DNA from: Klebsormidium nitens
Taxonomy: Eukaryota > Plantae > Klebsormidiophyceae
Assembly: GCA_000708835.1 (NCBI GenBank)
Contig: DF237127.1
Coordinates: 96,239-160,238, forward strand
Length of the DNA: 64,000 nucleotides
Reading direction: 5' to 3'
The stretch's first letter is position 1. The number at the start of each line of letters is the position of its first letter. The notes beneath the pieces were generated by a model, which made no database searches, was not told the origin of the DNA, and saw only the letters and a program-made list of their open reading frames with translations. Positions 14,401 through 40,185 of this stretch are shown here, one piece after another. Made by a program: the position numbers and the translations under genes.

Positions 14401-15338
14401 ATTCGGACATCGCGACGGTGCCGGTGGACCGGTGCGTGCTGGACCTGGCGGTCGATCCGACGGACTCGTACGTCGGCGCGGTGGCGATCGACGGCCAGGG
14501 CATCGAGAGCAATGTCAAGGTGCGTTCTCAGCAAGACAGAGTCACTTAGGATAAATATGAAGGTACAAATAAAGCCTTTGAGTCAATCAGGGCAAAGGAA
14601 AGGCAAAGGAGAGGCAAAGAAATGTTGTGACTCGAATATAAGCGAGAAGAAAAGAACAAAACGAACGTGAGAAGAAAAGAAGGTAGATGAAACCGATTTG
14701 GGTGCTCTTGGATTGAGCCTGTTACTGATGGTCGTTCCGCTCTCGGCTCAGAGATCAGGGGCGCAGCGGAACATATGGTCGAAGATCGGTTGGGTTATCT
14801 GGGTGTACGTCATCCTGATGATGACATTTTTAGACTTCCTCATCCGCAACTTTCCTTCTCTTGGCCGCTCTCTCATCCTTTTCCGTATTCTGATCTGAAG
14901 GTGTACGAAATTGGACGGCGGCGACCGGACGACGGCGACTCGGACGTCGACGTCAACGAGGAAGAAGATGACGAGAGCGAGGAGGAAGAGGAGGAGGAAG
15001 ACGAGGACGGGGGGGAGGGCGACATCTCCGAAGCGGAGGACGACGAAAACGACGGCGCCGGGGGGGTCGCCGCCCGGCTCCTGCGAGAGCTCGCGGAGGG
15101 GGGGGACGATGGGGACGATGACGTCAGCAGCAGCGGGGGGGAGGAGTCGGAAGAAGACGACGAAGTGGATGCGATGCTCGATGCAATGGAGGAAAGCGAC
15201 GAGGGGAGCGATGAGGGGGGGAGCGACGATGGGGGCGAGTATGGCAGCGAGGGGGGGGGCTCGTCGGCGGACGGGTATGATACGGACGAGGATTACGGAG
15301 AGGGGGACTTCGACGACTTGTTGCAGGGGATGCTATAA
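2472..15338 (+). CDS. DCAF1: DDB1- and CUL4-associated factor 1 (VprBP) homolog, ~2015 aa, 11 exons
   Basis: Exons 2472-2692, 3302-4817, 5386-6506, 8063-8312, 8683-8970, 9609-9932, 10459-11384, 11846-12230, 12631-12876, 14187-14519, 14901-15338; all GT-AG and phase-consistent (6048 nt). Plant DCAF1 motifs: DDDFFELVS..AAAARL, RERYSIQCL..LGEYLEALGPVL, LisH (ELLQVIHEHL..GLDKAAAALQQEA), SRFRPWRTCR, WD40 with WDxR motifs (LWDHRL, VWDLRT), VYEIGRRR and an acidic tail. Confidence 0.93.
7350..7973. other. Assembly gap (Ns) with overlapping flanks
   Basis: The 27-nt CCAATCTACTTTTCTTGCTCAAATAGG occurs at both 7323-7349 and 7974-8000. Confidence 0.9.
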
Positions 15339-16266
15339 GAGAATGTTTGAAGGGTTGTTTCCTTCAAAGTTTGGAGGGTTGATAAGCGTACGCACTTGCA
15401 AAGGTATCCCGACTCGTTCGTGACAGAGACCTTGGTGGTGTTGGTCTCCCATTTAGTCAAACCGCAGACGAAGACACGCTTAAAGCGACGGATCGCTGTG
15501 GATGTGCAGATTCCATGCAAGGCCGAACTTCGCAAGCTTCTCGAATCACGTATCCACGCTGAGTGTGCGCCAACCGCCACAGATTGATTGGTCTCATTCT
15601 CGAGTCCCTTTCAAACGACTCTGGGGCGGCCGCCATATGTTACGATGGTCCTGTATATCGCCACCGTCCCTGGCTTTCTATGGACGGTCCATGCGGTCAT
15701 CTTCATGCATGCCTATAACTCCAGACGATATAGCTCGCGGCCTGCTGGATGTTGGTCCCACAGGTTCAATCGAAAAACTAAATTTATATGCACACGACGA
15801 TGATCTTGTCTTGTATGAACAGGCTGATTTCCAAAGGTGTATCATGCTAATAATTGCTAGCGCTTTTCTTCCATGCAATATTTTGGTGATATCACATGCA
15901 TCTTTAAGGAGTTCGATCATGGCAGCTCGTGTTCGTTTAATAACTTGATGAACTCTAATTGTCATGCACTTCTTAGCATGGACTTGATGTAGTGACAGAC
16001 ATGCACATGGGTGAGGTGGAGATCCATGCGAAAGGTCTGTGCGTAGACTTTTCTAGCTATAAGGATCGGCGAAACCATTCTCTGCTTCCTTGTAAACATT
16101 GCGAGTCTGGACAGCTCCGTGAACACAGCCTAGTACTGTGGACTGAGACGGGCAGAAATTTCATGGAGGCCCATAGCATGTTTGAATGAATAAGCGGGGA
16201 AAATGTCAAAAAAACGGTGTGTTGGTCAGTCTGTAACCATCAAAGATTGCAACTGCGATCGCTCAC

Positions 16267-17852: not shown

Positions 17853-19030
17853 GGTTTTAAATGGTCGGTTCTAATCAAATGATTACACCACCACACCCTT
17901 CTTCACACTTTCAAGTATGGAGATGTGGAAGAAGCGCTTTCTGTGAATGCTAGTTCCGTTGCACAGCCTGCTCAATTGACTGACCCGTTGCGGCTGGACT
18001 TCAGCAGTTTCGGGGCAGGCTTCCCGGTTGCGTTGGATAGATAGGGTGTATTTAGGGTCTAAATCTAGTCTGTGTATAGGCTATTTAGTCTAAGTTTTAG
18101 CTTTTGCTTTGACGTCATTTAAAACCAAGGTGAACACCGAGCCGTAGATTCGCTGCTCAGGGCCCATCTGACGCGCCGATTTTTGCCACGTATCAATATT
18201 GGTCTCATCTATGACGTCAATTGGTCTGGTAATGCAACTAAACTTAGTCTAAATTTAGCGTAAGTTTAGACTAAATACACCCTATCTATCGAACACAACC
18301 GGGAAGCCTGCCCCGAAACTGCTGTTCCGAATGCTGATTCAAATTCAATGCCGAATGGCGCCCTGAAATTGCTAAAATGCTTGCCTTCTTGAGGCTGGAT
18401 TCCAATTTCAGACTGGACCAGGAATCGATCCGCCACGGAAGACCGGAACACGCCTCTAATCCACCTTCTCGATCTGAACGGAATGATTGTGACCGGAATC
18501 TGGACGGGAGGCGGATCATGCATGGAACTGCTGGCACTGCATTGCCATGAAAGTTTTGAGGTTTTGTGAGAAAATGGTGAGAAAGTGGTGCATAAAGGTT
18601 GAATCCTGGAAGGGGAAAAGGCGCCTTGCTTCGAGACAAGCGGTTAGAAAGGCTGTGTAACTTTGAAAGCCTTCTTCAATGCCATTTTTGTCCCTCCTAG
18701 ATGGGAGAGCGGATGTTTTAGCTGGAAGACCCTTTTGTCTGGATTCTATGAGATTCTTGAAGCAAGAGGAGCTCAGCAATGTGCCCGTTGTGCAAACACC
18801 CCTGTCAACCTTCCAAGCCAAGTCCTTACGTCTTCTCTGCCTTGCTTACACTGAACAGGTATAGCAGCTGTTGTAAAACTGTTAGAACTTGGATTCAATC
18901 CAAGCCAGCAAGCAAATCTGATTGCCCCAGCAAAGGTAGGCTGCGCTTACTTGGAGCTGACTCAGATAGGTACATTCAAGGCACTCCATGACATCAGCGC
19001 GCCTCAGCTGAAACCCCGCCCGGCGCAATC
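17853..19030. promoter_or_regulatory. Divergent (bidirectional) promoter region between LPA2 and the Agenet/GATA gene
   Basis: Head-to-head start codons at 17852 (-) and 19031 (+). Contains the foldback element and two TGACGTCA palindromes (about 18110 and 18211). Confidence 0.6.
18002..18324. mobile_element. Foldback / MITE-like element with 54-bp inverted arms
   Basis: 18002-18055 and 18271-18324 are 52/54 reverse-complementary. The AT-rich interior has repeated TAGTCTAA-like motifs. No target-site duplication found. Confidence 0.65.
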
Positions 19031-22000
19031 ATGGCGGTCGGAGGCGCTGGGGCAACTAGAGAGGAGTGGCGGAAGCGTGCGGTGACGCACCTGAGTGTTC
19101 CTGACAGCTTCCCTGCGGGAGAGGAGCTCTTTGTTCCGCAGCCCTTTGAGAAGGGCGCTGTCATTGAGACGCGATCCTTTCAGACGGGGTTCCGGGGGGC
19201 TTGGTTCCTCAGTGAGGTGAGGGGGGGGCTGGGAGGTCGAAGGGTATGTTTGAAGGTCGGAACAGGGTCAAGTCCTTAGTTTGTTCTAGTTCCCTAGTTC
19301 TAGTTCTCAGAGCATATTACCGTGAATGTGGGTACGTCTTTGATGCGCAGTGAACTTGTATTGTGAATGCGGCAAGTTCCCTGCATCTGATTTGTAAGTT
19401 GTCTGGTTGGGGATCTGGTTGTCGTTCCGGTCGGAGTATTGACTGGCTTCTACTCTTCAATTTCTGACTTTAAGAATTTGGTGTGACAAATACTCGCAAG
19501 ATTGAGCTCTTGAGTGGCCACATTTGTGAATAATAAGGTATACAAGCGTCTGGTGTTCATATGGCAATTTGCAATTTGCCAAGAGGTAAATCACAGATTC
19601 TTCTGAGATTTGGAGCGTGCCTGTTGGATGAAGTAACTACAACAATGTTACTTACAACCATACACTTTTGGATCGTGCTCAAAGGATGGCTAGAAGGGGC
19701 ACAAGTGCGAGTCAATCTGCCCAACATTCAACACTTCATTTGATTGATAGCGCCAGTAGCAATCGCCGTTAATCACCAATAATCCATTAATACGTTAATC
19801 CGTTAATTCTTGATCGTCTGTGGCTGCATGGATCATGGCCTGCTATTGTGGAAGACTAGGTCTAAATGAAGCTGAAAGCCACAGGTATGAAGGAAGACCT
19901 TTTGCTGTGCGAGTGTGGAGAAGCAGACACTTGTGCCTTGACGTCGGCGACAAAACATTTCAACACATTCAGGGACATATCTAGGTAACTCCCATATCAA
20001 ACTAGTCATTCCTCTTAGATTCGGATTTTCAATTACTGACACTCAACGCCCAAACCCATCAATTTACGCGCTCCATGGTGAACCCTCCATTACCCCCAAA
20101 CAACCCCCACTCATCTCTCGGGCGCCTTGTTTAGAAAGTTTCCACGTGATAGAACTAGAGTTACCGGGTATCAAAGGTCCTACATTTGGCCTGCAGGTCG
20201 TCGCCTTCCACACCGACCGAAGTATGCCGACACAGCAGGTCACAATCAGGAATTTGTCCTACCCAGACGATAGTAAGTTCTTCCTTCATCCTCATTCCCT
20301 CATGCTTCCCTTCTTTATTTTACGTTTCTTCATCTCTGTATTTGTGCCTCTTCTCTAGCAGGGAGGCGGTGCCTTCGTATCAAATGCACGTTTATTTATG
20401 CCAGTGCTAGAGAGGCGGTGCTGTCGTATCCAAATGCACGTTTGTTCATTTTAAGCATTCAAATCAAGCCCGTCTAAGATAGTGCATTGGCAACCACTGA
20501 GTCGACACATGTGCTGCATTGCAGAGCCGTCCAAAATGTGCCTGTACCAAGTCGACCCGAACGACAGAGGCTCGCGCTACCTCATGGTGCGACCAATTCC
20601 ACCCCGGAACATCCCTTTTGGCGAGGACGCACCGAATCCGGGGCAGACAGATCAGCCCGTCTTCAAGCACGAGCGCCAGTAAGCTGGATGGCTGTACTTC
20701 GCAGAAAAGGCACCACCATTAAGAAGGACACAGGAGGGCTCGGGTTCAGGAAAGGTGATGCAGAAAGGCGAAAGGGTGCAGAATCTCGCGGGTTTGAATG
20801 GCGGCTTGCTTTATTCATCGAAGTAGAGTTGCCGTACTGTGTTACCCCACGAGTAGTACTGACGAAATAATCTCTCCAGGCATGATGGTCGAAAAAGCCT
20901 CGATATTACGTGGTGGCTTGCCTGTTCGGTAGACCCGTACTACTCGTACTGCTCGTCGGTTAGGCATAAATGAGTGAAGACGGAAGGTGCTTCCATTGAC
21001 AAGCCGGCAATACTTGAAGTACTTTGTGGTGTATTTCCACACCGTTTTCAAGCACCAGTATGTGCCCAATGAAAAGACCCGGAACAACGAACAGGACGGT
21101 CCGATGCTTTAGCCTCGGCGCGCAGCAGAACCAACCTCGTGCGACATGTTGCGTCCGATTGCCTAATATCCAAGTTCCGGCGAGGTCGTCCGGTTCCTTA
21201 TCAAGACAACGGATCTCCAGAAGTGAGATCTTCCGAAACTTAGGCGATGAATGATGCTACCGTCCGACTTCGTCCAGGTATGCCAAGGGTGATAAGGTCG
21301 ACGCTTATGTCTTGGAGTGCTGGTGGAGCGGCACCGTCCGGGCGATCAGCGGAAAGCGCGCACGGGTAAGCCAGCCTTTTCTTGAACTGAGCCCAGTTTT
21401 GGCACAGGGATAATCATTAGTCACAACATGTAGTTTCAACTCGAGGCCTTCGTCAGAAATAGGTTCTCGTTCATCCGACCAACTAGTGGCACCTGCAAAA
21501 CAGGACTTTGTTTCACATTTGGAATCTGGTTGACCATGTGCTAGGTTAGGAGGTCGACATCCTGTCTGAAGAAGCGTTGTTGTACTACGGCGTTCCCATA
21601 TCAAAACCGCTCGAGAGCGGTAATATCAGCGACAGCCCCCTTGTGGTTCGTTCCCCGGCTCAGCTTCTTTATCTTCTGACCGCTTGAGACTGAAAAGGTG
21701 CAAAAACAGCGAGAACACAAATCGACCCTTTCTAGCTCTCTGTTATCACTTCCCTCAATGCGTTATTTTGCAGGTTGAGTGGCGCCCCGAGCCGTTCGGA
21801 GAGGGGGGCACGGGCTGGGTCCCCTTCAGAAACCTGCGNNNNNNNNNNNNNNNNNNNNNNNNNNNNNNNNNNNNNNNNNNNNNNNNNNNNNNNNNNNNNN
21901 NNNNNNNNNNNNNNNNNNNNNNNNNNNNNNNNNNNNNNNNNNNNNNNNNNNNNNNNNNNNNNNNNNNNNNNNNNNNNNNNNNNNNNNNNNNNNNNNNNNN

Positions 22001-25000
22001 NNNNNNNNNNNNNNNNNNNNNNNNNNNNNNNNNNNNNNNNNNNNNNNNNNNNNNNNNNNNNNNNNNNNNNNNNNNNNNNNNNNNNNNNNNNNNNNNNNNN
22101 NNNNNNNNNNNNNNNNNNNNNNNNNNNNNNNNNNNNNNNNNNNNNNNNNNNNGGGGCACGGGCTGGGTCCCCTTCAGAAACCTGCGGCCGACCCTTCGCT
22201 GGGCGGGAAAACGGTGGCACATGCTCAAGAATCTGACTGGCCCGCTTGGCAAGATCGTCGTTCCAGTCGGGGGGTCAGGGTCGCCTGCAATCGAGGCCCC
22301 CGGCGCCGTAGGGGGCTCAGAATCGAAAACAACAGGGACCCCCAGGAAGCGCGGCGGCTCCGCAGGGGGGTCGAACAAGGAGACGGAAGAGGCCCCCAAC
22401 GGATTAGTAGGGGGTTTGGGATCAGCGGCGAAAGAGACCCCCCGCAAGCGCCCCGGCTCAGCAGGGGGTACAAAAGCGGAGGCAAAAGCAACCCCCCGAA
22501 AGCGAGCCGGCTCAGCAGGGGGTTCGAAACCAGAGGCGAAAGGAACCCCCGGGAAGAGGCCTTGCGGACCAGCAACAGAAGCCGGGCCTGAAAGGGTTGC
22601 GAAAGCGGGCAAGCCTGCGGCGGACGCCTCGGCAGCCAGAACAAAACCCACTCCTAAGCCGGGCATGTCCGAGAAAGGCGCTGAGACACTGACAGAACGG
22701 AGCCCCCCGAGAGTGCGGCCGCCTCCCAAGGTCCGAACCCCTCCAGAAGTGAAGAAACCCCCGGAAAAGCAGGAATCTCCAAAAGTGCGGATACTTCATG
22801 AGGTGCAGGACTCCTCTAAACCGCGGCTGCAACCGGAGACGCTGTCCCTGCCCAAAGTGCACATCCCTGAGAAAGTGCAAACCCCCGAAGAAGCGCGAAC
22901 GCCTCCAAAGGTGCAGAACTCTCCGAGACCGCGCCACCTCTACAAAGTGGGAGAAAGGCCTCCAGAAGACGCGGGCCCCCCTGAGGGGGGGCAAACTGAG
23001 GAGCGGCCAAGGGGAGTGCCCGGGAGAAAGTGCTTCGACTGCGGGACAGAGAAGACCACTGCGTGGCGACGGGGCCCCTTGGGCGATAACACGCTGTGCC
23101 AGACGTGCGGGGTGCGTTACTGGCTGATGAAACTGAGGGAGAAAAGGTTGGGGAGGTCGGAGACGTTTGAACGGGAGCGGATCGAGGCGGTGCAGAATCC
23201 GGGGCCTGAGGGGGCGACAGGTGGCAGCGGGCTAGGGATGACAGGTGGCGGCGCCCCAGAGGTGACAGCTGACGGCGGGCCAGAGAAGAGCTGTATGCAG
23301 TGTGGGAAGTGGAGGAGAACCAAATTGAGTCAATGGCGGACGGGGCCGCCAGGGAAAGAGACGCTGTGCAACGAGTGCGGGCTGCAATTTCGCAGGCTGG
23401 GCCCCGATTGGGTGCCAGGTGGCGCCCTTCTATTGGCCGAAAGCACCGCGCCAGTACAAGCTGGTGCGGGCAGGTACTTAGCCAAGCGGGGAGAGCCGAC
23501 GAAGGGGTTACGCAGCACGAGTGCGGGGCCGATCGGACAAAAGGGGGGTACAAAAACAGGCGTTGAGGAGGGGTGGTGGAGAAAACCCGGGTTGGGCAGT
23601 GGCAGCTTCTTTGACAAAAAAATAGACCGGTCGGCGCTGGAAGGAAAGGGCACGGAGAAGCTGACGAGTTCGGCAAATGGGGATCCATTCCGCCTCCAAA
23701 GGCCGCCAGCCTCTTTTGCGGGCCCCCCTGGAAAGCCGAGGCAAGGCCCCCCCGCGGAGAAGAAGCGGGCGGCACGAGACTTGGAGTCGTCGAGTTTGTC
23801 GGAGTCTTCGAAGCGGATGCGGATCCAGGGCAACTCGGTGAGGAGTGCTAGTGCGAGGATCATCGGACAGGCCCTCAGAAACGTCCGGATACGGCCAGAC
23901 GCTTCCGGCGCGTCCGAGAAAGCTGTGTCCGGAAATGCCGCGTCCGAAAAGGCTGTGTCCGTAAATGCCGCGTCCGAAAGCAAGGAGAGGAACGTCGAGA
24001 GAGAACGAACGGCGGCCGGAGATGAGGGGGCGCAAGCGAAAGGAATTTGGACGCAGCCCGACGCTTCTGCTGCGGCCGAGTGCGACGTGTCCGAAAGCAT
24101 GGCGCCTGAGAAGAACGTTGAGACGGAGAGCGAAGGGGCCGAACAGAAAGAGGCGAAAGCAGAGCGAGAGAGGAAACAGCGGGCAGAGGCGCGGAGAAAG
24201 AAACGGGAAAGGGTCTGGCGGCTGAAAGCACAGCTGGCGTGTTCGATTGGCGAACCGAAGGGGCAAAAGGTTGCGAGGCTGAAAGCACAGCTGGCATGCT
24301 CAGTAGGCGAGCCTATCGGGAAGAGAAAAAGGCTTACGCGGCAAGAGGCGAGGAGAGAGGATGGCGAGGTGGGGGTGAAAAGCGGGGCGGCGAAAGGGGG
24401 GCCGACGAGCGGAAAGCGAATCGATGTAGAAAAGGGAGGGCTTACGAGAAATCGGGGTGCTTCAGATACGGGGGGTGTAGATAGAGGGCTTAGCAGCGCC
24501 GCTAAGAAACTAGCGGTGTACGAAAAGCTGAAGCGAGTGGTGGGGGGTTCGGACAAGGTGACGCGTCCGAAAGGACGTCCGAAGAGAGGGCGTCCGAAGA
24601 AGGGCGCGGCGCAGGAATCACCGAGGCGGAATCCGAAGAGGGGGAGAAAGAGCGACGAGGAAGAGAGCAGCGAAGAAAGCGACCCGTTACGGGGTGGAAT
24701 TAATGAAGGAAAAGAAAGTGCGGGCGTAAGGGAGAAGGAAAAACAGGGAGTGTCAAAGCCACCGAAGCAGAAAGGGCCGGGACGGCCGGTGTTTTGGGGG
24801 GTCAATTTGGACGAGTTGATCGTTGAAGAGGAGTTTGAGCTGCCGGAGAAGGTCCGGGCGCGGGCGGAGAGGGAACGCAGGGAGGTTAGGCGACGGTTAA
24901 GCGAGGTTAGCGGTGCAGGTGGCGAGGCGGGGAGCAGCGGGAGGGATCCCTCGGGAATAGAAGAGGTGCTTATTCACAGTGTGAAAGTGCCGGGGAAGAC

Positions 25001-28000
25001 AAGCCGTGGGGAGAGTGTTGTCGAGAGCAAGAAAGCTGGAGCGAGGAGCGATGCGGCGGGGCTCGAGACGGGAAGAGCGCGGTGTTTTGCGGGAGTTTTA
25101 ACGGAGATAGGCGCGGGGGAAACTCCGCTCCTCGGGCAGGAAGGAGCGGACGATTCGGGGGGTAGTCGGGCCAGTGAAACGATTCCCCTAGGAAGCGCGC
25201 ACAAAGTGGCAAGCAGCGGGGGGGGTGCTGGGACCAGCGGTCGGACCCCCCCGGAAATCGAACAGCCACCACGGCCGGATGAGTTCGATCTAACGGAAGA
25301 GCTCGTCTCCTGTCTAGACAAGTCCGAGGCCTTGTCCGCAGCGGAAGAGCTTCTTAGTAGGTGGGAAGAGGTGTCGCTGGACGAGGTACGGGGCCTCTTC
25401 TTGATGGTCAATCTTTGGAGTCCGGACGAGGAGTCGCTGAAAGATCCCGTGGGGTGGTATCGGGACAAGATCGAGGCGCTCGCGTTCCGGGAACAACGGT
25501 TTGTGGAGGTTGGGAGTGGGGGGAATGCGGGGGTGTTTAGAAAGTGGGCGGTGAAAGATGACGACAGAGATGCAACAACGGAGGGAGAAAGGAGGCTTGG
25601 ATTTTCGGAAAGACTGGAAGCGGTGAGTGCGGGGTCACCATCACTAAAAGATTTCTTCACGTCTTAGCACGTAAACCCTCGGTTGATAGCAGACTTTACA
25701 CCCTCGTCGAAGCGCGCCAGCCACAGAGGGGAAAATGCTCGGTTCGCCTTCGCTTGTCCGCTTTGGAATTGCCATGCGGCTACATCGTTTTGGGTATTGG
25801 ATCCCCGAAGGTGACTCCTTCTCTGACCAGCAAAGCCCATCCATTCAATTTCTCGATAATCTCGTCGGTTGCTTGACAGCAGGAAGGATAAGAGGAATGG
25901 GAAGGAAAAGGCGCATGTGCAGGACGTTTTCTAATAGGACCTGTGCTCAGCTTGTGTTGAGGCATCTCAATCTCAACTTCTCAAGAGCTCTTCACACCTG
26001 TATCCTCCCTCAGGCGAAGGACGGGCCACTGGGCACTGCTCCTCTCGAAGCTGGCGTCAACTATGCCGACGTCAGCACCGCCGCTCCTCAGGCGCGAAGC
26101 CGTGAGCCTCTCGGGACGTTCCCCGTCAGTGGAACATTCGATGCGGAAGCTGCCAACGTCCCCGCTCCGACGTCAGCCAGTCTGGCAAATCCAACGTCGA
26201 AGACGGCTGAGATTTCGAGCGTTCCGGGCTCTAGAGGCGAAGCAGTGCGAAGGGACTTACTTTCTTCGGACGTCCTGCCTGGGCCTGGGGCGTCCGTTGC
26301 TCGGACGCTGTCCGAAGGTATGGCGGACGACCGTGGTGGGGGGCTGGAGTCGAGCGACGGGGTGAATCCGAAGAAGGGCCTCAATAAGGACGACGAACGA
26401 GAACCAATCGGCGGGCCTGTCCCAGACAACGGGCTACGAGGGAACGATACGATCTCGAGTAAGGAACTGAGTCCGAACGGAAGGCTAGACCTGACTGGGG
26501 GGTTACATTTGGGCCAGGGCCTGGCTGCGGGCGGAACGCTGGACTCGGAGTGGGGGGTTGTTTTGGATAAGGCGATGGGTGTGGAGAAAGAGTTGAATGC
26601 GAACGGGGGGCTGGGTTCACATGGAGGGCTGCGATCGGACGGGGATCCAAATAAGGACGAGGTTCTGAGGTCGGCCAAAGGGCCAGTTTCGGACGGGGCA
26701 CTGAAGGGGCCAAGTTCGGACGCGGGTTTGGACTTGAACGGGGGACCGAGGGCAGACGAGAGGGACCAGGGGCTGGAAACGGACGTTGTTCGGACGCTGG
26801 ACGGGGGCCTGGATATGGACGAGGGGCTGGATTCGGACGCTGGGTTACGTGCGGACGCGGGACCGAATCTGGGCGGGGAGCCGAATAAGGAGGAAGCGTC
26901 GAATGCAGACCGGAGGCTCTTTTCGCACGTGAAGGTGGCTGTGTCCGTGGGGCTTCATTCGGACAGAGGCCTGCCTGCGGACGACGGCCTGACTCAGAAA
27001 GACGTCCGAAAGTCGGTCGAGGCGCTCCACTTGGGTGAGAGGAAGGATCCAAACGACGGGCACACTGCGAACAAGGCTGCTCAGCGATCAAACGGCAGAG
27101 AGGGGATGATGCGTGTTGAGAAGAAGCGTTTGGTCGAAGACTCGGAGAGATCCGGCGGGATGGGGCTGGAGGGATCGGGGGGAGGCGTGACTGGAAACGC
27201 TTTGGAAACGCAGCAGGCAAGTCGGTGGTGACAACAGTCTGATTTGCGTTGTTAGCGCCTCCTATTTCATTGGTTCATTTCTTTTTTTGTGAGATTCCTC
27301 GAATTCTGAACCATTTGCTGGCTCTGACCACGCATGCTATGGGTTGTAATTCATGGATTCGATAACAAATATGTTGAAAAAGTCCTTTTTGGTGGAGGGA
27401 ACAGCCACACTTTTCGAAAATGTGGAGCGAAGAGCCACTAATGGGGCTGTTGCGATGCGTCTCTTCTAGACTTCTCAGATGATCGACATCGGCTCGAGTA
27501 GGCTTCTAGGCTTTTCAGGTGAACGACTTGGGGATTTATTCGAGCTGAATTTGGGGCACCGAAGGTAAAGCTCTTGCTGAATTTTTTTGCAAGCTATATC
27601 CAGGAGCAAAGACCCTGCTGCCAACCCTGGGTCTTTTCTCACAAGATAGCAATTTTGGAGAGATAGCAATGGTTGTCAAAGAAGGGTTGCGAAGAGACTA
27701 CTGTCACCTGTCAGCACCTTGTATCCATTATGGTAGGGTAAGACTTGTATTGGCGTAAAGAAGATGGGCTTACCCCCCGACCTAAGCTGCTCTCTGGAAA
27801 AAGAGAGCATTGCATATTGCATATTTGCCTTACGATTGCTTCCGTCTGTTTCCTTCTTCGAACTCACACCAACGACCGCTCTAATGCTCTTATCGGACCG
27901 CTCTGATGCTCCCTCATTCTTCTGTTCACAGGGCCTGCGGATACCTCCCCCCCGAGGGAACCCGCCTGCCGCCGCCGCGCCCGTTTGGTCCGAGCACAGA

Positions 28001-31000
28001 ACCCCCGACGGTCGCCCGTACTACTTCAACCGTGCGGTCCAAGTCTGCATATGGGAAAAGCCGTTGGAGCTGATGACCCCCCAAGAGCTGCATTCCCTCA
28101 ACGTTTGGAAGGAGCTCATCACCCCCGACGGGCGCGTTTATTACTCCAACAGACTCACGATGGCGTCGAGTTGGACTGTGCCGGAGGATCTTCGCGCAGC
28201 GGGGGGGGGCTGGGCTGCTGGATCTAAGGGGGGGGCTGCCTTCGCTGGTGAGGATTCTTTAGAATTGACTCTTCAACATAAGGATAATGAGCTGTAGGAT
28301 AAGCTCCTTAGCCACTGAGTCTTTTATCCCCAACGTTACGTGCTCCACAACCGTAAGCACCGTGAACCGCCAAACCAATTCCATCGGCCCCAGGCTGGTG
28401 ACTTCACCGTCAACGCTCCCGATCTCTAGACTGAATCTTCATGCTCTATGGTTGGGGTCTGGAGTCAGCAGGTGGGTTTTAGCGCAAAGATGTTGAAAAT
28501 TCAGCCGCTATCGATTGAGATTCTCAAAATACAGCAAGATTCGAGACGGGGGCCTTTGAAAAGCAATCGCCATGCCAGAGAAGCGAGGACGAGAGGGAAA
28601 CACTTCAACACTGTGGTTTGAAGAACCGCAGTGCTCCGCTCCTGTCGCTGAGTTGATCGTTGATCCCTTGTCGGATCCCGTTCCTTTTTGCGAAAGAGTC
28701 GTTGGCTGCTTCGTCAGTTTCTTGCAAAAGAAAAGTTTGAGCCAATCCATTGTAGTGAATACTTTGGTGGACGAATTTTCTGATGCTATAAGACAGTGTT
28801 CGGCTTAGGTCAAATCTACGGTTTCCGGCCATGCTGGTCAAGTAGGAAACTGACTTGCCACCCTTGTCATCAGACCCCTTCTGCGGTCGATCCTTTTGCA
28901 GTGTTTCTCTCGTCAAGTTGTAGAAAGTATCATCTCTTGGTCATGACACACGAAATCTTGCTGATTTTACGGCCTCGCTTGTTGAATTGTCTTGTTATTC
29001 TTACTCGAGAGCGCTTCGGTGTGTTCAAAGGTCAGGATCTCTCAGACCCTAATGCCTTGAAACCATTCTGCATTGCTTCCAGGTCCTATTGCTTCCCGGG
29101 CGTTTCCAGACGCCCAGCGAGCGGACTGGGACAGCCTGTTCCCCTGCATTGCGAACGGCTTCCCAACGGTTCCAGCGACTGAGCGGGCCACTCCGGACGT
29201 GCTGCGGACGCCTTTGGACGCACAACGAACGGTTCTGAGCGGCCGTCGGACGTTCTCGGACACGCGGCAAGCAGAACTGGACAGCCTGTTCCCCTGCTCT
29301 GCGAACGGCTTCCGAACAGTACTAACAACCCAGCCGGCGATTTCGGGCGGACTTGGGAGCGCTCCCGACGCACTGTGGACACTTTCGGAAGCACAACGAA
29401 CGGATCTAAGCGGCCGCCGGACGCTTTCGGACACCATGCAGAGGCTGTCGGACGCTGTCGCCGGGCGCAGCTCTGCAGAGCGCCCCTTGGCAGATGGTGC
29501 AATAAGGTCGAACCAGGTGTTAGCAGGGGACGGATTTACAGGGTCTCCCGACCCACTGCGGACGCTTTCGGACGCACAGCAAACGGATCTAAGCGGCCGC
29601 CGGACGCTTTCGGACACCATGCGGAGGCTTTCGGACGCCATTGCAGGGTGCAGCGCTACAGAACCCCCTTTGCAGAATGGTGCGATAGGGCCGAAACGGA
29701 CGTCAGCAGGTGCGAGAGGGTTGGGGGGCGGTGAAGAGGATGAAACGCACTGGTTAGCGGACCTGATCGTGGAGTCTCACGAACACAAGTGCGGCGCCGA
29801 GCAGGTTGGACCTCCACTTCAGGGGCCTAACCCGGCGCCCCAATTATTCCCGAACACACCCGGCTTAGTGAGCCCCCCAACCCAGAAAGCGTCGGCCAAA
29901 GTCACCCCTGTCCAGCCGCTGACCTCCCCAATCCCGCCACCCACGCCTAGTTACCCCCTCGCTCCTTCGAGCATTAGTGCCTGGTTAGCCAAACCCTCAG
30001 AAAACCCTCAAGACGGAGGGAAACGTCAAATTGTGTGCGGAGCAGGGGAGATGTTGGACGCTCGGACGAGTGCGGCAAAAAGTGGAGAAAAGCAATCTCC
30101 AAGTGTGAATACACGCCGGCCAGCGCCAGGTGTCCACCTACAGATGGCGCCAGGTGGCGTGCAGCGGCTGGTGCCAGGTGGCGCCGGGACGGTGACTGAG
30201 GTGCCACTTGGTGGCGCGTGGACTAACGGAACGGAAGGGAACGGATTTGAGGCTGGGGGCAGGTCTGAGCAAGTACCCGGTGGCACGCTTCCGGGGCGGG
30301 AGAATGGCGCGCACACAGGGGTGGAGACGGCGGGTCAACTAGGAGAGCTCGCGGGCGGTCCGCTGGGAGAATGCGGCGAACGGAATGGTAGTCGCAAAGG
30401 GTTGACCAACGACCGCAGCGCAGAGGTGAGGCTCCCCAAAATCCCGAGACGTTTTTAATGCAGTTGTTTCGATGTCGTTGGATGGCTTTGGGGATCATAG
30501 TGTAGCCGTCAAATTCCTCTTCAATTGAGAGTAGGGAAGAATGCTCTGCTTGGTACATGTTTTTTGATCGCGCCGGAAAGTCGTCCAGCCTCTCCTGATA
30601 CAATCAAAGTGCTGAACGTGCTACTAGAAAAGACAATTTCAATGCATTAGGAGCAAATTGAGGGACCTTTTCTGACGAAGCGTTCTTACGAATCCCCTGA
30701 TCAGGTGTGCACAAGCCATCGGTTTAAAAAGTCAACAAAGCTTTCCTGATGTCACGCTTACACACTAATAGATGCTTGTCCCTGCCCCGAAAAAGTACAG
30801 ACAGTCATGGTCATATCTTAACGTTCTTCCGTGGATCTGCAGGGTACGCAACCCGGCAACCCTGCGACGAGTCACTTCGTTCCTGGCAGAGACGGCCACC
30901 CCGGTCTTTGGCACACCATCCTTCCCGGTGGGGTTCTCATCTCCCAGTTCGGGACCCCCCCGGATGTAAACCAGGGGTCCATGCTCCCCCCTGCTACGAG

Positions 31001-34000
31001 TCCTGCACTGACACTGCAAAACGCCCCTGTTTCGAACCGGGGGGGTAATGCGGCCGGGTCAGAGACAACCAGAGTCGCCCCGCCGCCGATCTGGTTTCGC
31101 CGACGTGTTTCCGACAACCTTACGGTGTTCAGTCAGCCCCCCGCTTCCGTCCAGGGGGGCATGTCCCCCCGTCCCGCCACCATCTCAATGAACCCTTTGT
31201 CAGCCCCACCTTACGCTGCAGGGGGGTCGTCAAATCTTTGTGCTTCTCAAGCAATGGCCGCTGAGCTCACCCATGGTTTGTCTCAGGGGGTGGCTCCAAA
31301 CCCCGGGCCGGGGCAAATGCAGCCCCCCACAACGGTTTGGGGTGTTCCACGGCTGCCAATAAACCCCCGGGGGTTAGGAGCTATACCGATTTCCGCTCAC
31401 CCGAGAGCCTCTGGCGCGGCCATCATCGCCCTTCCAGCTCCGGGGAAACCTACCGAGGGGATCCCTTCACAAAGGGCAGCTGGGAAACGGGGCCGGCCCC
31501 TAGGGTCGAAGAACAAATCGAAGTGCCGTCAAGTGGCGATGTTGTCTTGGGAGGAGTTGCAGCAGATGAAGGCAGGGGGCAAAGAGTCGGTGTTTCTCGC
31601 TCTTGCCGCGTACGAAAAGCCGGCTCCGTTGGAAGCCCCCGATTCCGCTGCACTTTCGTCGCTGCCAGAGATTCCCCTTGACATGGTCGCGCCGGAAGAT
31701 TCAGCCAGGCAGCTCGGGCCAGCAAACACGCCGAAAAACACGCCGGAAATTGTGCCCAGCAAAAGCCCAGACTTCGCATCGGAGCGAGAGGGGGAGCCGG
31801 GGCCAGAAAGCACGCCGGATATCCCGCCCAGTAAAAGCCCGGTATTTGAACTGGGGCGAGAGGGGGAGCCAGGGGAAGGAAACAGTCCAGAGCTTATGCC
31901 CCGCGAAAGCCCGGTAACCGAAACGGGGCGAGAGGAGGGAGAAGCATCAGCGGACGAGGTCGGCCATCCAAATCGTGCGCAGTGCGCTCCGAACCGGGCT
32001 GAGACCGGTTCCCACCTGGCTGCGAATCCGGACGAGTCTCCCGCTGAGAAGAGTCCTAACGATCTGGATGAGTGCGAGGGGGCGGAAAGAGTGCTGGACA
32101 AGTTCGGACGTCTAAACGGTGCGGAGAGCGGTCCGAACCGGGCTGAAACCGGTCCCCACCCTGCGGCGAGTCCCTACGAGTCACCCGCTGGGAAGAGTCC
32201 AAACGGTTTGGACTGGTTTTACTCGCTACTCGGCCCTTCGGACCAATCCCCGCGTCCGCAAGCTGCGGTCGGTGGAAGTCCGGCAGTGGCCGCACGTCCG
32301 GAAGAACGGCCGGAAACCGAACGGCCGACGGCCCGGGAGTGCTCCGCTTGCCGCGTGTCCGAGAGTCCTCAGTGGAGGCGTGGCCCCACGGGGCCCCAAA
32401 GTCTGTGCAACCGTTGCGGGGTTTTTTGGTACAAGCACAGGGACGGGTGGGGGGATTTCCTGGAGCAATTCAGCCCCCCCTCAGATGGAGCGAACGGCCT
32501 GCCTTGCGGCAATGAAGAAAGTGCCCGGTTGGATGTCCCGGTCGCTTTTGAAGAGTGCCCGGAAGCCGTCGAAATCGCCCACCAGGCCGAGGCAGCGGCG
32601 GCGGGAAGCTTAGAGGGTTCGGAATCGCCGGACGGTCCGGTGTCGGCGGGAGTTCGGACGGTCGGACGCGCCACTTTCAGGGAGGTGACGAGCGAGGACG
32701 AGGTGGCTGCGGCGCTGGAGAAGAGCCTGCGGGCGGCTGCCACATGGCAGCGGATGGCGCACTCGCTCGCGCGGACCACCGGCCTGCGCTCGAGGCTGGA
32801 GGAGTTGGGAAAGGGGGGTGCAAATGGCGGGATTCCAGGGGGGGTGGACGGTGCGGGAAACGGAAGCGTGCTGGAGGCGTCGATAGAGGACGGGGGTAGC
32901 AACTATGCGAGAGCAACGCGATCCAGAAGAAGCCGCGAAAGTATGGAGAAGGCTCTATCGGGGGCTGCTGAGGGCCTGGGATCCGGGGGGGGTGCTGCGG
33001 CACATGAGGACACGGTGGAGAGGGATGCAGGTGGACAACTTGCAGGGGGTGCCGAATGCCTGGAAAATGGGGGGGGTGCTGCGAAGCAAACGGGGGAAGG
33101 GACTGCGGGCGTGCAACTTGCGGGGGCCGGCCGGAGGTACGGACCGGAGGAAATCTGGTGCGGGAGTTACCGGGGGCGATGGGGACCGGATGGGGCGTTT
33201 GTTTGGACGGACAGCAAGAGTGAGGGCCCTTGTTCAGCCCTCGCTTTTTTAGGACGACCGTTTGGTTCGAGGGAATTCGTATACCTTTTCTTTTCGGGGC
33301 GTTGTTTCAAGCGACAACAAGAGCGGGCGAAATACTCTAGCTTTTATAGTGATGCTGTCATGGACACAACCCGACGTGCTCACATGACATTGGAGACAAG
33401 GGTTGCTAGCCTAGACATACCACATTTCCTGGTCAGTGAAGTAAGGAGCGGTGCCCTTGAGGTCAATCTGCGCAATCACCCTGTTCACATCCATGCTTGT
33501 CTTTGCTTTCCAGGTCGCCGCGTCCGGTTCCGTTCCGGTGGCCTGGCCCAGCTGGAGTCCGGAACGCCCGTCAAACCAAAGGGGAAGAAGCGCGGACGCA
33601 AACCCGGGGCGCCAGAGTCCGCTTCAGGTGGGCTGGCCCACGCGGAATCCGGAACGCCCGTCACACCAACAGGGAAGAAGCGCGGACCCAAGCCCCGGGT
33701 GGCCGGGCCGTCCGACTCGGACGCCGACTTCCAAGCCAGGCGGGAACGGGAAAGGAAGCTGTGGGAAAAGCGGATGGACGGGTGTTTCGACCGCATTCAC
33801 GAAATCTTCTCGCGGGCGAAGCCGATCCTTGCTGCGCTGTCCGAAAGATTCCCGCCTGGGGAAGGCGACCGTCCGGTGTCCGCATCTCCTCCGGGCGATC
33901 CCAAGGTGTCGCCGGGATTCGACACTTTCGCGCTGAGGGGGTTGACGGACTGGGCAGACGAGGAGTGGGAGCTGACCCCCCTGCCGAACGGGGATCCCTC

Positions 34001-34205
34001 GCACATCGGCATGGAAAGAACGGGCCGACACAAGTTGCAGGAAACGGGGGGGAAGGAAGCAAGCATCACCGGGGCTGGGGACCGGAGACTGAGTCGAAGC
34101 GGCCGAGGCGAGCGGAGGATGAAGCATCTCAAAGTGAAGCTCAGCAGGCAGGTTTTCGTAGACAGGACTCTCACTTACGTCAAGGCAGTTCCGTTGGCGG
34201 GTTAA
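19031..34205 (+). CDS. Giant multidomain chromatin/transcription protein: 2x Agenet(Tudor), 3x GATA zinc finger, AT-hooks, tandem WW; ~3311 aa, 10 exons
   Basis: Exons 19031-19216, 20197-20272, 20525-20678, 21278-21365, 21774-25622 (348 nt of gap plus overlap removed), 26014-27216, 27932-28247, 29083-30425, 30843-33219, 33514-34205. Every junction is phase-consistent; one has a GC donor (27217). Domain motifs are read directly. The single-gene joining is inferred from splice sites only. Confidence 0.72.
19136..22222 (+). other. Tandem Agenet/Tudor-like domains (split over exons 1-5)
   Basis: FEKGAVIETRSFQTGFRGAWFLSE...YLMVRPIPP, then YAKGDKVDAYVLECWWSGTV..VEW..GWVPFRNLRPTLRWAGKRW; both fit the plant Agenet consensus (G..VE..S...GF.GAWF; VDA....WW.G.V; LRP...W). 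Confidence 0.78.
21839..22152. other. Assembly gap (Ns) with overlapping flanks inside exon 5
   Basis: The 34-nt GGGGCACGGGCTGGGTCCCCTTCAGAAACCTGCG occurs at 21805-21838 and 22153-22186; collapsing it gives a continuous Agenet sequence. Confidence 0.9.
23031..23108 (+). other. GATA zinc finger 1 (C-x2-C-x18-C-x2-C)
   Basis: CFDCGTEKTTAWRRGPLGDNTLCQTCG. Confidence 0.92.
23292..23378 (+). other. GATA zinc finger 2 (C-x2-C-x21-C-x2-C)
   Basis: CMQCGKWRRTKLSQWRTGPPGKETLCNECG. Confidence 0.88.
27980..28195 (+). other. Tandem WW domains, PRP40-like
   Basis: VWSEHRTPDGRPYYFNRAVQVCIWEKPLELMTPQELHSLNVWKELITPDGRVYYSNRLTMASSWTVPEDL. Confidence 0.9.
29120..29645 (+). repeat. Coding internal repeats in exon 8
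   Basis: DSLFPC.ANGF occurs twice (about 29130 and 29280). RT.(S/L)DAQ.T.LSGRRT.SDT occurs three times (about 29205, 29380, 29560), with near-identical DNA in copies 2 and 3. Confidence 0.85.
32340..32417 (+). other. GATA zinc finger 3 (C-x2-C-x18-C-x2-C)
   Basis: CSACRVSESPQWRRGPTGPQSLCNRCG. Confidence 0.92.
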
Positions 34206-35659: not shown

Positions 35660-38600
35660 CTACTCCCCGTAACGCCTCCACTTTCGAAAGTTGGTTCCTT
35701 CGCTAACCGCCATCCCGATCGCAAACTGGATCCGGTCACTGACGCCCACGTAGTACAGCCGGTAGCTGCCGTCATCCAAAGCGACCACGTGGGGCGTTCC
35801 GACGTTCTTGCTGTCCCAGGCGTCCTGCGAAAAAAACATTCTTTGAGCTCGAGCGGAACAACGGAATGGATGATCGAAGGTGGACGAAAAGGATGCGTGC
35901 TACCGCCCAAAGCGACCATGTGGGGGCGTTCTGACGTTCTTCTTTACCAAAAGTCCTTCGGAAAGCAAAACTAATCTTGAATAATATTCCAGTCCTTTTC
36001 TGGTTGCATTCGTGTGGTTTGAAGAGTGCCCGCCTGCGAGGCACCTTCGACTGGACCATAATGCATGACGACTGAGAATCAGCGGAGCACAACTCAAGAA
36101 TGAACGCTACATTTAGAAACGCGATGGATGATCTCCTCGCTTTCACGTTAAAGTGCCCACAATCTGCCTTCAATGACAGCCTCGCAAATGCACGAAATAC
36201 CACAGACGAAGAGCCTTCATGAGCTGTCTTCATCAAACTCGACGCCCTCTCTCTCGATATTCAACCTTCAGTACCTGGCCTTAGACCGCTAATCCAGCCA
36301 ACTTTGTTGAAACTAAAATCCAATGTTGCAGTGGTCGATGAGGTTTTGGCTTCAAGGGGGGCGCAAATTATGATCTGACAATGGAGTAGCACTTGCTTAA
36401 AGAATGAAGTCATAAATGGATGCAATCTCTAAACAATCTATTATGACCCTCACTTATATTTTCTGAAATAATATAAAACATTAATGTAAATCTTTACCGT
36501 ACCTCGCCTGTCCGCGGCCGTAGGATTGGGCCGCCGGGATCGGGTCCGCATTGCCGGTCCTTCTCCCACGTCAGTCCGTCGTCCGACCACGCGAGCCCGA
36601 TCGCATGCACCTGGTTCCGATCTACTGCCTCGTAAAACATGGCCAGCCTGCAGGCAAGGCGTAAAACTGTTGCAGCCGTTCGAATAAGCTTTAGTTGCTT
36701 CCACGTCATCAGCTTGACGGGAGACAGAGGCTGAAAAGAATCGCTTCTCTGGACGTCTCCGAGGACTTCAAAGCCTCCGGACGGAACGAAGCTGCACAAA
36801 AGCTCAGTTACTTCGTTCGTATGGCGGATGGCTAGACGGTCCATGGAAAGACTAGAATCCACCGAATGTTCCACCTTTAGTTGCGGTTATTAGTATAAGG
36901 CCACATAAAGAACCAGCAGAGTCAAAAGAAGAGCTCTCCTGGGGCGTAATTGCTACCTAAACTCCTGTTAAATGAGCATCTGATGAAAATACACGCTTCT
37001 CAGAACCAATAACATGATGCTCAATCACGTGGCTCTGCGCTTCTCGGAAGCACAGGACAAATGAAACAAGAGGAAGCTCCGAATGCTACTTTGACCACAC
37101 ACGAACAGAAACGAGCCAGGCTCTTGTGCCCAGTGCGAAACACAGGCCCTTCCTTGATCGAAAATCTGTTCCAAAAAGCACAAGCAAACAGGAACTACTC
37201 TTGCTAAGGTTCAGGTGGTCAGAATTCATGCTCACCTCCCGTCTATCCTGATGACGTGCCGCACCCCCACCCCTAGTTCGTCCCACGTGCCCTTCCCTCC
37301 CGGCCCCAAAACCTGCCCGCGCTTCTGCCACGTCACCCCATCTTCCGAGGTCGCCGCTGCGGCCCAGAAGATGCCCTTGGGGTTCAGAGAGTGATACGTC
37401 ATCAGCCACGTGTCATCCGTTCCTTCTTGGGGGGGTACGACTTTCGGCCAGCCCACGTAGAGGGCATCCCACTCTCCGGGAACCCCCGTTGGGAGGATCG
37501 GTTGGGGTCGTCGTCGAAAGGTCAGACCGTCCTGCGCAGAGAAGCGGGACGCTTCTTTATGGTTGGCATAAACCGAAGGGACGCTTCTCGGCTTATCTGA
37601 AGGCCGTTGACGCTTTGATGTTTCAAATGGACTATGCCGTTTCGTGGCTTCTAAATACCGGGGCGGACGCTTTCACAGACCTATATGGATTGACGTAGAA
37701 GGGGGAGGGTTGCAGAAGAAATTAGAAGGGAAAGAGGAGCCAATACATTGAGAAACGCTCGCATATGCACAGAGGATGAGGACACGAGTCGAGGTGAAAG
37801 AGGAGCACTACGCTTTCTGTCGCCGTGGTTTGCAGAATCCGTAGGGCATACGCAAAGTAGTTTCCGCGATTGAGGACACTCTTTTTTGAAACACACGTTA
37901 GAATTACCGATGAACACTTCCAGCTCTGTCAGTTTTGGAAAGGTGAGTTCAGTCTTCCTCCTCTGGAAAGATGAATCAATCGGTGTCTTCAGTATTCCAC
38001 TTGAAAGTCGAGAAAACGGAGGTAAAAAACTGACTTCGGTTCCGAGACAAGCCTTCTTAACAATCCATATTGACTCTTTGCCAAGATGCTATAAGCTGCC
38101 CCCTCAATCGCTTGGCAGCTTCCAAAGAGAACAAGGATTCAAGCTCTAGAAGAATTGCGCCAGCCCAACTTTGAAGCCGTAAAAGACATCCTTCATTTCG
38201 TCTTGGACCAAGATCTTTCAAACTTACCGGTGATGTCGCGAGCCCGACCTGCCAGTTTAACCCGGTAAACTCTCCCGGCATCATTTTCATCATCCCCTTC
38301 ACTAACGTCTCCGCCCCCCGCCCCCAATGCGCCCCCGCCGTCGCCCCAAGAACCGCCCCTACCCCACTCCCAATCGGCGTTTTCTCCAGACCCCCCCCAA
38401 AATAGTACAACCAATGCTCCCCCCCAGGACGAATCAAAACGTCGGAACTCCCCACGACTACGGAGTCGAAAGCGGCGGGGTCCTCTTGCGGCCCCAGGAC
38501 TGCGAAGTTCGGCAGGGGGCCTTGGACTTTTCGCCAGGTGACTCCGTCAGTGCTTTCAGCAACGCCGACCCATCCCATTGGGGGGGCCATCATTGCCTTG

Positions 38601-40185
38601 ACGCCCTGGCCCCAAAAGTCTCCTCCCCTACCATAGTAGTACATGCGCCACGAGCCATCACTGCAAAAAGGGGAGTTAAAATGAGTACTCCGTGATGATG
38701 ATTCATCAACCCGTTAAACCTTTGAGCTTGCAAAGGTTGTTTGGGTTCATAGATGGGGAACCTCCGGCTTGTGGAACTTGTTGCAAACACGATATATCGC
38801 CTCCGCCGATGCATTCTACTCAATAATAACAAGAATAGATTGCAAGAGTGCAGAACCGAGGCCCAAGTGCCTCCGCAATGCGTCTAGTGCAAATTGCCTT
38901 TCTAGAAGTGGTCACAAACACATTTGTATAGACGACTGCTAGCATATGTGATAGTGAGAATATGGACAGTCAACGGAGAAACGGCGGACAGGTCTTGGAG
39001 GTTCTGGCTTCACAACTGGAAACCAGTCTTCAGAGCACCCTTAGAGAATGGTTAGAATGGCTACATTGATGGCCACCAGGCATGTACCATGGGAAGAGGG
39101 GGCGTGAAGAAACTCGGAGTGGCAGCTAGACGGTAGGTCTTGACTCTACCCAATGACAGGCCGCTTGCTCCATTCCTTTCCAACCTTAATCATGGCAACT
39201 TGCATAGGCCTTTTTTCTTTGGCAATCTTTAGAATCCCTTGACACACCTCAGAACTCAATGAGTGGCCTGAAGAAAGTGTGAGCCGCCTTCTGCGAGACA
39301 GACAAAGAGTCCGCAAGTAGGAGCAACTTTCACAAAACGCTTGATACTGATAATTGGAATTCTGAAGTGTTTGCCAACTGAGGTGCCAATTGCTACAGGC
39401 ACACCTGAGCAAGAGACCTCTGCAGGATTCTGAACACAGACTAATAGGCAACTCCAGGACGAGAAAACAAATCTCTGCCCCATATCTACTTACGTCAAGC
39501 GCACCACCGCAGGGCAGGCTGCTGCCTTAGCGTCCCACCAACCGCTGCCATCGCCTGACTTCTCCAGAACCCTTCCAAGAGTGTAGTCAGCAGACTTGCC
39601 ACACCCTTGGTCTCTGCTAGCTGACCTCCCAAACCCTCTGCATGTCAACCTGCCTGACCTAGCACCGTACTGTTGGTCTGCTGGCCAGCTATGCAATCGC
39701 CTCGCGCTTTGCGTTGTTTCTCTGAACTCAGATGGTTTCGGATTGGTTTGCCTTGGTTCTGATTGACTACCACTCTGCCAGGGGTGCTCAGAATGGAACG
39801 TTTTCCCCTCTCTGGAACCAATGCTGCAAGAAACCCTTGCTTTGACCGCATGTTGTTGCGTTTCATAGCTTGTAGTAGCACCCCAGAAAGACCTTGAAGA
39901 TCCACCTTGAATGCAGCTCAAACTATGCAACTCTACACTCTGCAGCTGGGAAAGGTGTCTCTGCTCACGAGGAGAAGAATAAACTTTTGAATGACCAATT
40001 TCTGAGAAAGTGTGAGCTGGATTCAAAGCCCTTAGACTAAACTGCCTTCTGCAATGCTGTGAGCTGTCAAATGCTGTGTTGAGAGAATATGAGCAATCAA
40101 TTGGACTCTTCGAGCTTCGCAGACGAAGGCAAGACGGCATTGTGGTTCCTTGGAGCGGATCAAAGCAGACGGAAGCATGCGCCAT
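35660..40185 (-). CDS. Plastid-targeted five-bladed beta-propeller glycoside-hydrolase-like protein (arabinanase/levansucrase/invertase superfamily), ~576 aa, 5 exons
   Basis: Exons 40185-39494, 38660-38228, 37531-37236, 36647-36503, 35824-35660 (1731 nt). Repeated blades of the form (W/F)D....G.P.V......W.MYY.G.....IG.A.S.DG.TW, e.g. AFDSVVVGSSDVL..HWLYYFG, EWDALYVGWPKVV..WLMTYH, AWDSKNVGTPHVV..YRLYYVG. Ser-rich transit-peptide-like N-terminus. Confidence 0.85.

Follow-up and report, generated by a model that had tools for sequence, protein, structure and literature searches.

The subject of this analysis is a locus in a 64,000-nucleotide (nt) stretch of DNA from the alga Klebsormidium nitens (contig DF237127.1, positions 96,239 to 160,238; hereafter, the window). 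The window is G+C-rich eukaryotic DNA and, on the forward strand between positions 19031 and 34205, carries four very long open reading frames (ORFs) along with smaller ones, which most likely constitute a single ten-exon protein-coding gene. When joined, the ten exons comprise 9,936 nt with 3,311 codons and zero internal stops, as determined with a script run on the joined exons; in all searches, the gene model was compared exon by exon, and length and frame were the properties computed for the joined product. The explanation that, in our assessment, best accounts for the data as a whole, with a probability of about 0.78, is that of one gene for a 3,311-residue modular protein that belongs to a Klebsormidium-lineage family and would act as a multivalent nuclear scaffold.

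The locus was compared with L001, a collinear 14.5 kb contig of a related alga from the Logan assembly of SRR23617307, which contains all the exons in unchanged order at 61-88% nucleotide identity, and with L002 and L007, two more distant relatives from JGI metagenomes. The only annotated relative found is P0041 (KFL_002460120, GAQ85636.1), a K. nitens paralogue of 1,412 amino acids labeled 'Agenet domain-containing protein', which is encoded in assembly GCA_000708835.1 at L003:3001-10921 (DF237195.1).

Exons, introns and the joint reading frame

Exon 1 (E1, 19031-19216; like all the exons, on the forward strand) consists of 62 codons from the ATG at 19031 and encodes the first strands of a candidate Agenet domain; the ATG and its context are kept in L001, and the donor (GAG/GTGAGG, the slash marking the splice site) is identical there. 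The second half of this domain is encoded in exon 1b (E1b, 20197-20272; 76 nt), a conserved block inside intron 1 that has a CAG acceptor and a GTAAGT donor, in L001 as well as in the window. E1b was also found in L002, the only relative other than L001 that was checked for it, and P0041 has a small exon at the matching position. The small exon at this place is confirmed by its conserved splice sites and its presence in L002. A model in which exon 1 ends at 19211 and is spliced straight to exon 2 was replaced by the one with the 19216 donor and E1b, given the conserved acceptor and donor of the latter. A reading of the block as a small nucleolar RNA was also ruled out, with zero Rfam RNA families anywhere in the window. 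Exon 2 (E2, 20525-20678; 154 nt) encodes a linker with an RPIPP motif that follows the first Agenet domain, with amino acid identity of 80% to L001 and 66% to L002 and with splice sites kept in both, and exon 3 (E3, 21278-21365; 88 nt) encodes the first half of a second candidate Agenet domain.

Exon 4 (E4, 21774-25622) includes an assembly gap and measures 3,501 nt once the gap and a 34-nt duplicate are collapsed (21774-21838 plus 22187-25622). It encodes the end of the second Agenet domain, a Pro/Lys-rich region, two GATA fingers, an AT-hook and a Trp-rich region denoted here module X. E4 is one open frame in the window and in L001, where it corresponds to a 1,322-amino-acid ORF (P0001; 59% identity over 98% of the query), and the differences between the two at codon positions 1, 2 and 3 (250, 231 and 351, respectively) display an excess at the third position. 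Exon 5 (E5, 26014-27216), a disordered linker that ends in a GC donor (CAG/GCAAGT), is open over 401 codons in the window and 440 codons in L001; the other frames contain 5-17 and 2-17 stops, respectively. Exon 6 (E6, 27932-28247; 316 nt) encodes a tandem of WW domains and is 73% identical to L001 at the amino acid level; exon 7 (E7, 29083-30425; 447 codons) encodes a repeat-rich disordered region, with conserved splice sites and a coding tandem repeat of 183 nt, and is open in both species. Exon 8 (E8, 30843-33219), with its conserved donor A/GTGAGG, encodes a second AT-hook, a third GATA finger and a terminal conserved motif. The junctions 25622/26014, 27216/27932 (the one with the GC donor), 28247/29083 and 30425/30843, all predicted initially, have proper splice sites and compatible phases.

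The initial annotation had arrived at one frame of about 3,300 amino acids connected through nine phase-compatible junctions, and the single frame holds, at 3,311 amino acids; the last of its ORFs, however, contains an intron (33220-33513) that had been taken as coding. In the window, this intron 9 (294 nt) continues the reading frame free of stops but has GT..AG ends; its homologue contains 6 in-frame stops in L001 and, in L002, extends over ~1.1 kb, with stops. Sequence conservation ends and resumes exactly at the intron borders. If intron 9 were retained, 98 residues would be added and the protein frame would remain unbroken, its length being a multiple of three. Exon 9 (E9, 33514-34205), which includes the stop codon, encodes the basic motifs KKRGRKPG and KKRGPKPR and conserved C-terminal motifs, among them LRGLTDW..EEWELTPLP (33933-33986) and KHLKVKL, and its amino acid identity with L002 and L007 is 40-45%, including blocks of residues that do not vary.

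The comparison with L001 bears out the exon-intron organization and shows that selection acts on the joined frame. Each of the nine introns is bounded by GT or GC and AG at a position homologous to that in L001, among them the intron after E5 with its rare GC donor (CAG/GCAAGT), and the intron phases are the same in both (0,1,2,0,0,0,1,0,1). The exon length differences (0, 0, 0, 0, -162, -117, +15, +228 and +30 nt) are all multiples of three, and those of the introns are not; read-through stops are present in every intron, except for intron 9 in the window. From E4 through E8, the model frame contains 0 stops in both species, compared to 2-46 in every other frame, and none of the 2,000 shuffles per exon left the model frame open. 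The periods of the tandem repeats in the locus are all divisible by three, and the third-position excess is present in exons 4, 6, 7 and 8. The borders of the N-terminal exons coincide with those of P0041. In L002 and L007, the order is kept for E1, E2, E3, E4 with module X, an E8-like exon and E9.

Folded modules and disordered regions

In the window, L001 and L002, the exon-wise matches to the Agenet domain (Pfam PF05641) invariably fall in the N-terminal half of the model: exon 1 matches model positions 1-18, and exon 3 matches positions 1-30, with E-values of 0.07 in the window, 0.009 in L001 and 0.0017 in L002. Exon 3 is 46% identical to residues 115-142 of P0041 (E 5e-7), with the same exon borders, and in P0041 itself the Agenet domain is above threshold, at 38 bits in 2 stretches. 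The arrangement of the candidate pair resembles that of tandem-Agenet readers, namely, plant AGDP1/ADCP1 and EML proteins and animal FMRP, in which Agenet/Tudor-like barrels are likewise paired at one end of a long protein; none of these is known to contain GATA fingers or WW domains.

GATA fingers (Pfam PF00320) were called as CX2CX17-20CX2C with a gathering cut-off of 26.8 bits, and Pfam detects them with 52.4 bits, in 2 stretches, within 22155-25664 and with 47.9 bits within 30831-34202. Finger 1 (23031-23108) and finger 3 (32340-32417) both have the canonical CX2CX18CX2C spacing, are conserved in L001 (finger 1 being nearly identical) and have GATA fingers as their best matches in the Protein Data Bank (GATA-1, GATA-3 and Arabidopsis GATA18). 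Finger 2 (23292-23378), the second Pfam stretch, is atypical (CX2CX21CX2C) and fast-evolving; in L001, it has a 20-residue loop, the conserved Trp is gone, and 12 of the 40 residues in its bin are identical. By its sequence, finger 2 is degenerate and outside the usual loop spacing.

The spacing of fingers 1 and 3 is common to plant GATA factors of classes A-D. Plant GATA factors are small, usually single-finger proteins in which the finger is accompanied by CCT/TIFY, HAN, LLM or ASXH partners. None of the partner domains of these classes (CCT+TIFY, HAN, LLM, ASXH) appeared in Pfam scans of all the long exons, in which only GATA and WW were listed, and the protein described here, with three fingers in 3,311 amino acids alongside Agenet and WW modules, falls outside classes A-D. 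No Klebsormidium GATA identifiers were found in the supplements of PMC11608367.

The AT-hooks were called by pattern alone, as an R-G-R-P core with basic flanks. AT-hook 1 (24563-24611; RPKGRPKRGRPKKG), with KRGRPKKG at ~24590, derives from a 15-nt tandem repeat (24563-24606; period 15, 3.2 copies according to Tandem Repeats Finder), which makes the canonical RGRP core. At this place, L001 has 5 residues (one repeat unit) fewer and reads RRPKKG, with no GRP core, so that the hook is not conserved; it looks like a DNA-binding motif born of a microsatellite-like expansion. In AT-hook 2 (31485-31520), which starts with KRGRPLGSK at 31485, KRGRP is conserved in L001.

For the WW domains (Pfam PF00397), the criterion was two Trp and a Pro, approximately W-x20-22-W-x2-P, with a cut-off of 26.9 bits; Pfam detects 2 stretches within 27764-28294 at 60 bits, and the W...W..P pattern is present in both WW1 (27983-28063) and WW2 (28103-28183). 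The best solved match of the pair is the tandem WW of PRPF40A (2l5f; E 2.4e-17, 77 residues over both domains and the linker), which supports the PRP40-like character that had been attributed to it, and yeast Prp40 (1o6w) matches with E 1.2e-14. The tandem WW domains of PRP40/PRPF40A (FBP11) and TCERG1 have a spacing equal to that of the pair here. Because no FF domains follow the pair (Pfam, exon 7 empty), the protein is not a member of the PRP40 family. In contrast to PRP40 and TCERG1, the pair here is encoded by one internal exon of a chromatin-type protein and is absent from L002, where the exon 6 query has no match even at E 50, and from L007, with no match at E <= 1e-3; given that the exon is missing in these two relatives, the WW pair appears to be an accessory module rather than part of the family core. 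In L001, intron 6 contains a second, incomplete copy of the WW exon's 5' end (L001:9153-9234; its translation includes AHVWSEHRTPDG), ~260 nt upstream of the real exon and with 73% nucleotide identity to window positions 27930-28011.

Module X (25275-25565; ~90 amino acids, Trp-rich), at the end of E4, is 65% identical to L002 and L007. It occurs twice in the paralogue P0041, where the better copy is 47% identical, and twice in P0014. The 10 copies conform to the pattern W-x11-F-x3-N-x-W-x-P-x-E ... W-x-R ... W, with 10 invariant residues, four of which are Trp. The AlphaFold2 model consists of three helices and a hairpin, with a core pLDDT of ~90; no credible solved relative was found (best Foldseek E = 1; best VIA-align Z = 4.9), and a winged-helix reading of the model topology, with no credible fold match, is unsupported. 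The ESM Atlas yielded chance-level matches only, and a scan of metagenome contigs with module X alignments revealed no relative. At E <= 10, Pfam detected nothing for module X, for the exon 8 segment 32601-33218 or for exon 9. The end of E8 (33132-33206) encodes a motif, RRYGPEEIWCG.Y.GRWGP.G.FVW, that does not vary between the window, L001 and L002.

Outside these modules, the composition is strongly biased: 75-79% of the residues encoded by the long exons are G, S, P, A, E, K, R, T, Q or D. Judging from this composition, about three-quarters of the product is low-complexity or disordered, with small folded modules strung along it.

One gene or several

Several observations weigh against the reading of the locus as one gene for a multivalent nuclear scaffold. 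The Agenet scores are sub-threshold, at 19.2 bits on exon 1 (19031-19276) and 13.6-19.3 bits across the exons, with a cut-off of 27; low scores that cover half of the model are as would be expected if introns split both domains. E5 has 45% amino acid identity to L001 and no third-position excess, with 126, 132 and 134 differences at the three codon positions, and appears to evolve almost neutrally at the protein level. E5 and E7 together are weakly conserved (45-59% amino acid identity), and their nucleotide identity falls partly within the range seen for the introns. It is possible that internal promoters exist, or that isoforms with a retained intron end at 25667 or 27231. Furthermore, no annotated protein was found over exon 4 (at any length) or over exon 4 and exon 8 (in the length range of the word searches), although the K. 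nitens GenBank proteins were among those searched; the public gene set may have omitted or mis-annotated the locus, perhaps owing to the gap. Finally, a role as a nuclear chromatin- or DNA-bound scaffold would be deduced wholly from the domain content.

Some of these observations would also fit two or more adjacent genes in a kept order, for example, an Agenet-GATA-X gene made of exons 1-4, with the stop at 25665-25667 reached through donor read-through, and one or more downstream genes made of exons 5-9, with promoters in what are here putative introns. The weak constraint on exon 5, an ATG at 25735 that is in frame with this exon, and the far shorter K. nitens paralogue of 1,412 amino acids are compatible with such a split, but the 93 codons that separate 25735 from the acceptor (26014) show no conservation, and L001 lacks such an ORF. 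Moreover, in E4, E5, E6, E7 and E8, amino acid conservation starts at the acceptor, 22, 102, 47, 117 and 46 codons, respectively, before the first Met; no Met lies near the start of conservation in exons 6, 7 and 8, and in L001 a stop codon directly precedes the WW exon. Hence, E4-E8 must be internal exons that would be unable to start translation alone. The phases and the multiple-of-three length differences are kept over all the junctions, and the spacers are merely 391-835 nt long. We therefore consider the split into several genes rather unlikely.

A decaying or otherwise non-functional locus, in which long frames remain open because the DNA is G+C-rich and repeat-rich and selection acts on the small domains only, is a highly unlikely explanation. 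It would be in line with the biased composition (~75-79% of the residues are of ten kinds), the lack of codon-position bias in exon 5 and the gain or loss of modules among the relatives. It is at odds with more than 3,300 stop-free codons in two species that differ at 12-39% of the exon nucleotides, with other frames full of stops, as well as with indels and repeats that are in frame in every case and with the third-position excess in exons 4, 6, 7 and 8.

The gap in exon 4 consists of 314 N (21839-22152), beginning 65 nt past the acceptor, and its flanks are an exact 34-nt duplicate (21805-21838 is identical to 22153-22186). Aligned with L001, the left flank reaches base 3462 and the right flank starts at base 3431; over the collapsed join, L001 is unbroken, with window positions 21838 and 22187 corresponding to L001 positions 3462 and 3463 and no indel. 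Because the flanks duplicate 34 nt and L001 is contiguous, the gap is, by all signs in the sequence, spurious, two overlapping contig ends joined with a spacer, with nothing missing and the frame continuous. A scaffolding error that placed the Agenet exons ahead of an unrelated GATA gene, which the position of the gap within exon 4 might suggest, is extremely unlikely, given the exact overlap of the flanks, the independent contig L001 with all the exons upstream and downstream of the join in order, and the same order in L002 and L007.

A lineage-restricted family and its proposed role

The domain order initially read from the locus (two Agenet domains, two GATA fingers, an AT-hook, two WW domains, an AT-hook and a GATA finger) is borne out, with the qualification that AT-hook 1 is not conserved in L001 and finger 2 is degenerate. 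The suspected lineage restriction also stands: among 1.84 billion representatives, exon 4 matched only two proteins below E 1e-30, both of them ORFs of related algal contigs. A full HMMER search with exon 4 revealed no longer relative. When exon 4, the WW exon and the last ORF were used in word searches, every match was an ORF of a related contig, and neither an annotated protein nor a spliced fragment appeared. Literature searches for the domain combination yielded nothing relevant.

The relatives differ in their modules. In L002, a single 836-amino-acid ORF takes the place of E5-E7. L007, which is 80-85% identical to L002 at the nucleotide level, introns included, lacks the stretch with GATA finger 3, and the ~540 nt encoding it are present in L002 (19272-19809). 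The paralogue P0041 has the N-terminal tandem Agenet, with the same exon borders, and two copies of module X, but no GATA finger and no WW domain, and is under half the length of the protein described here. Three further contigs of sample SRR23617307 (L004, L005 and L006) contain one or two copies of module X. Taken together, the sequences delineate a small Klebsormidium-lineage family with a core of tandem Agenet and module X, to which the gene described here belongs by virtue of the shared Agenet intron positions and at least one module X. The GATA, AT-hook and WW modules seem to be accessory and labile; they may have been added to the core and, in some cases, lost again among close relatives. 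The full combination was found only in the closest relatives, and the architecture is unstable.

Upstream of the gene, a 39-nt block (18475-18513), ~520 nt from the ATG, stands out clearly from its surroundings with 95% identity to L001:150-187, and further conserved blocks extend up to the ATG (18905-19030). These blocks, in which Rfam detects nothing, are possibly a promoter, a 5' untranslated region or part of a neighbor on the opposite strand. As far as can be told from ORF translations only, the upstream neighbor (10435-15340, forward strand) is a predicted multi-exon gene ending in a long acidic tail, and the exons of the downstream neighbor (36494-40185, reverse strand) look like those of a beta-propeller glycosidase-type protein.

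With regard to function, the domain content suggests a multivalent nuclear scaffold. The GATA fingers and AT-hooks would hold the scaffold on chromatin via DNA, the Agenet pair would anchor it through a methylated histone or protein ligand, and the WW pair would recruit proline-rich partners. A link to splicing might be drawn from the likeness of the WW pair to PRP40, the sole feature that points in this direction, but FF domains are lacking and the close relatives L002 and L007 have no WW exon, both of which make the link weaker. The boldest interpretation, which we regard as unlikely, is that of a recent lineage-restricted invention, in which a GATA factor was fused to a histone-mark reader and a PRP40-lineage WW pair, linking chromatin state, promoter DNA and the transcription or splicing machinery, with module X as an undescribed domain that defines a Klebsormidium-specific chromatin family. 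Giant disordered multi-domain nuclear proteins are common, and all the parts of this one are known kinds of domains; thus, what the gene adds is a novel arrangement of such domains, confined to a narrow lineage of algae, and not a new principle.

Among the algal relatives of land plants, Klebsormidium serves as a reference genome, and the origin of plant gene regulation is reconstructed with the help of its transcription factor repertoire. Given that the locus is seemingly missing from the searched protein sets, the GATA factors counted in this alga may be one too few, with an unusual member left out. The family also appears to capture domain shuffling in progress: close relatives differ in whether they have the WW pair and the third GATA finger, and a 15-nt tandem repeat has given rise to an AT-hook. 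By combining a putative chromatin reader with a WW adaptor and predicted DNA-binding fingers, this natural fusion would make cooperation between the modules testable.

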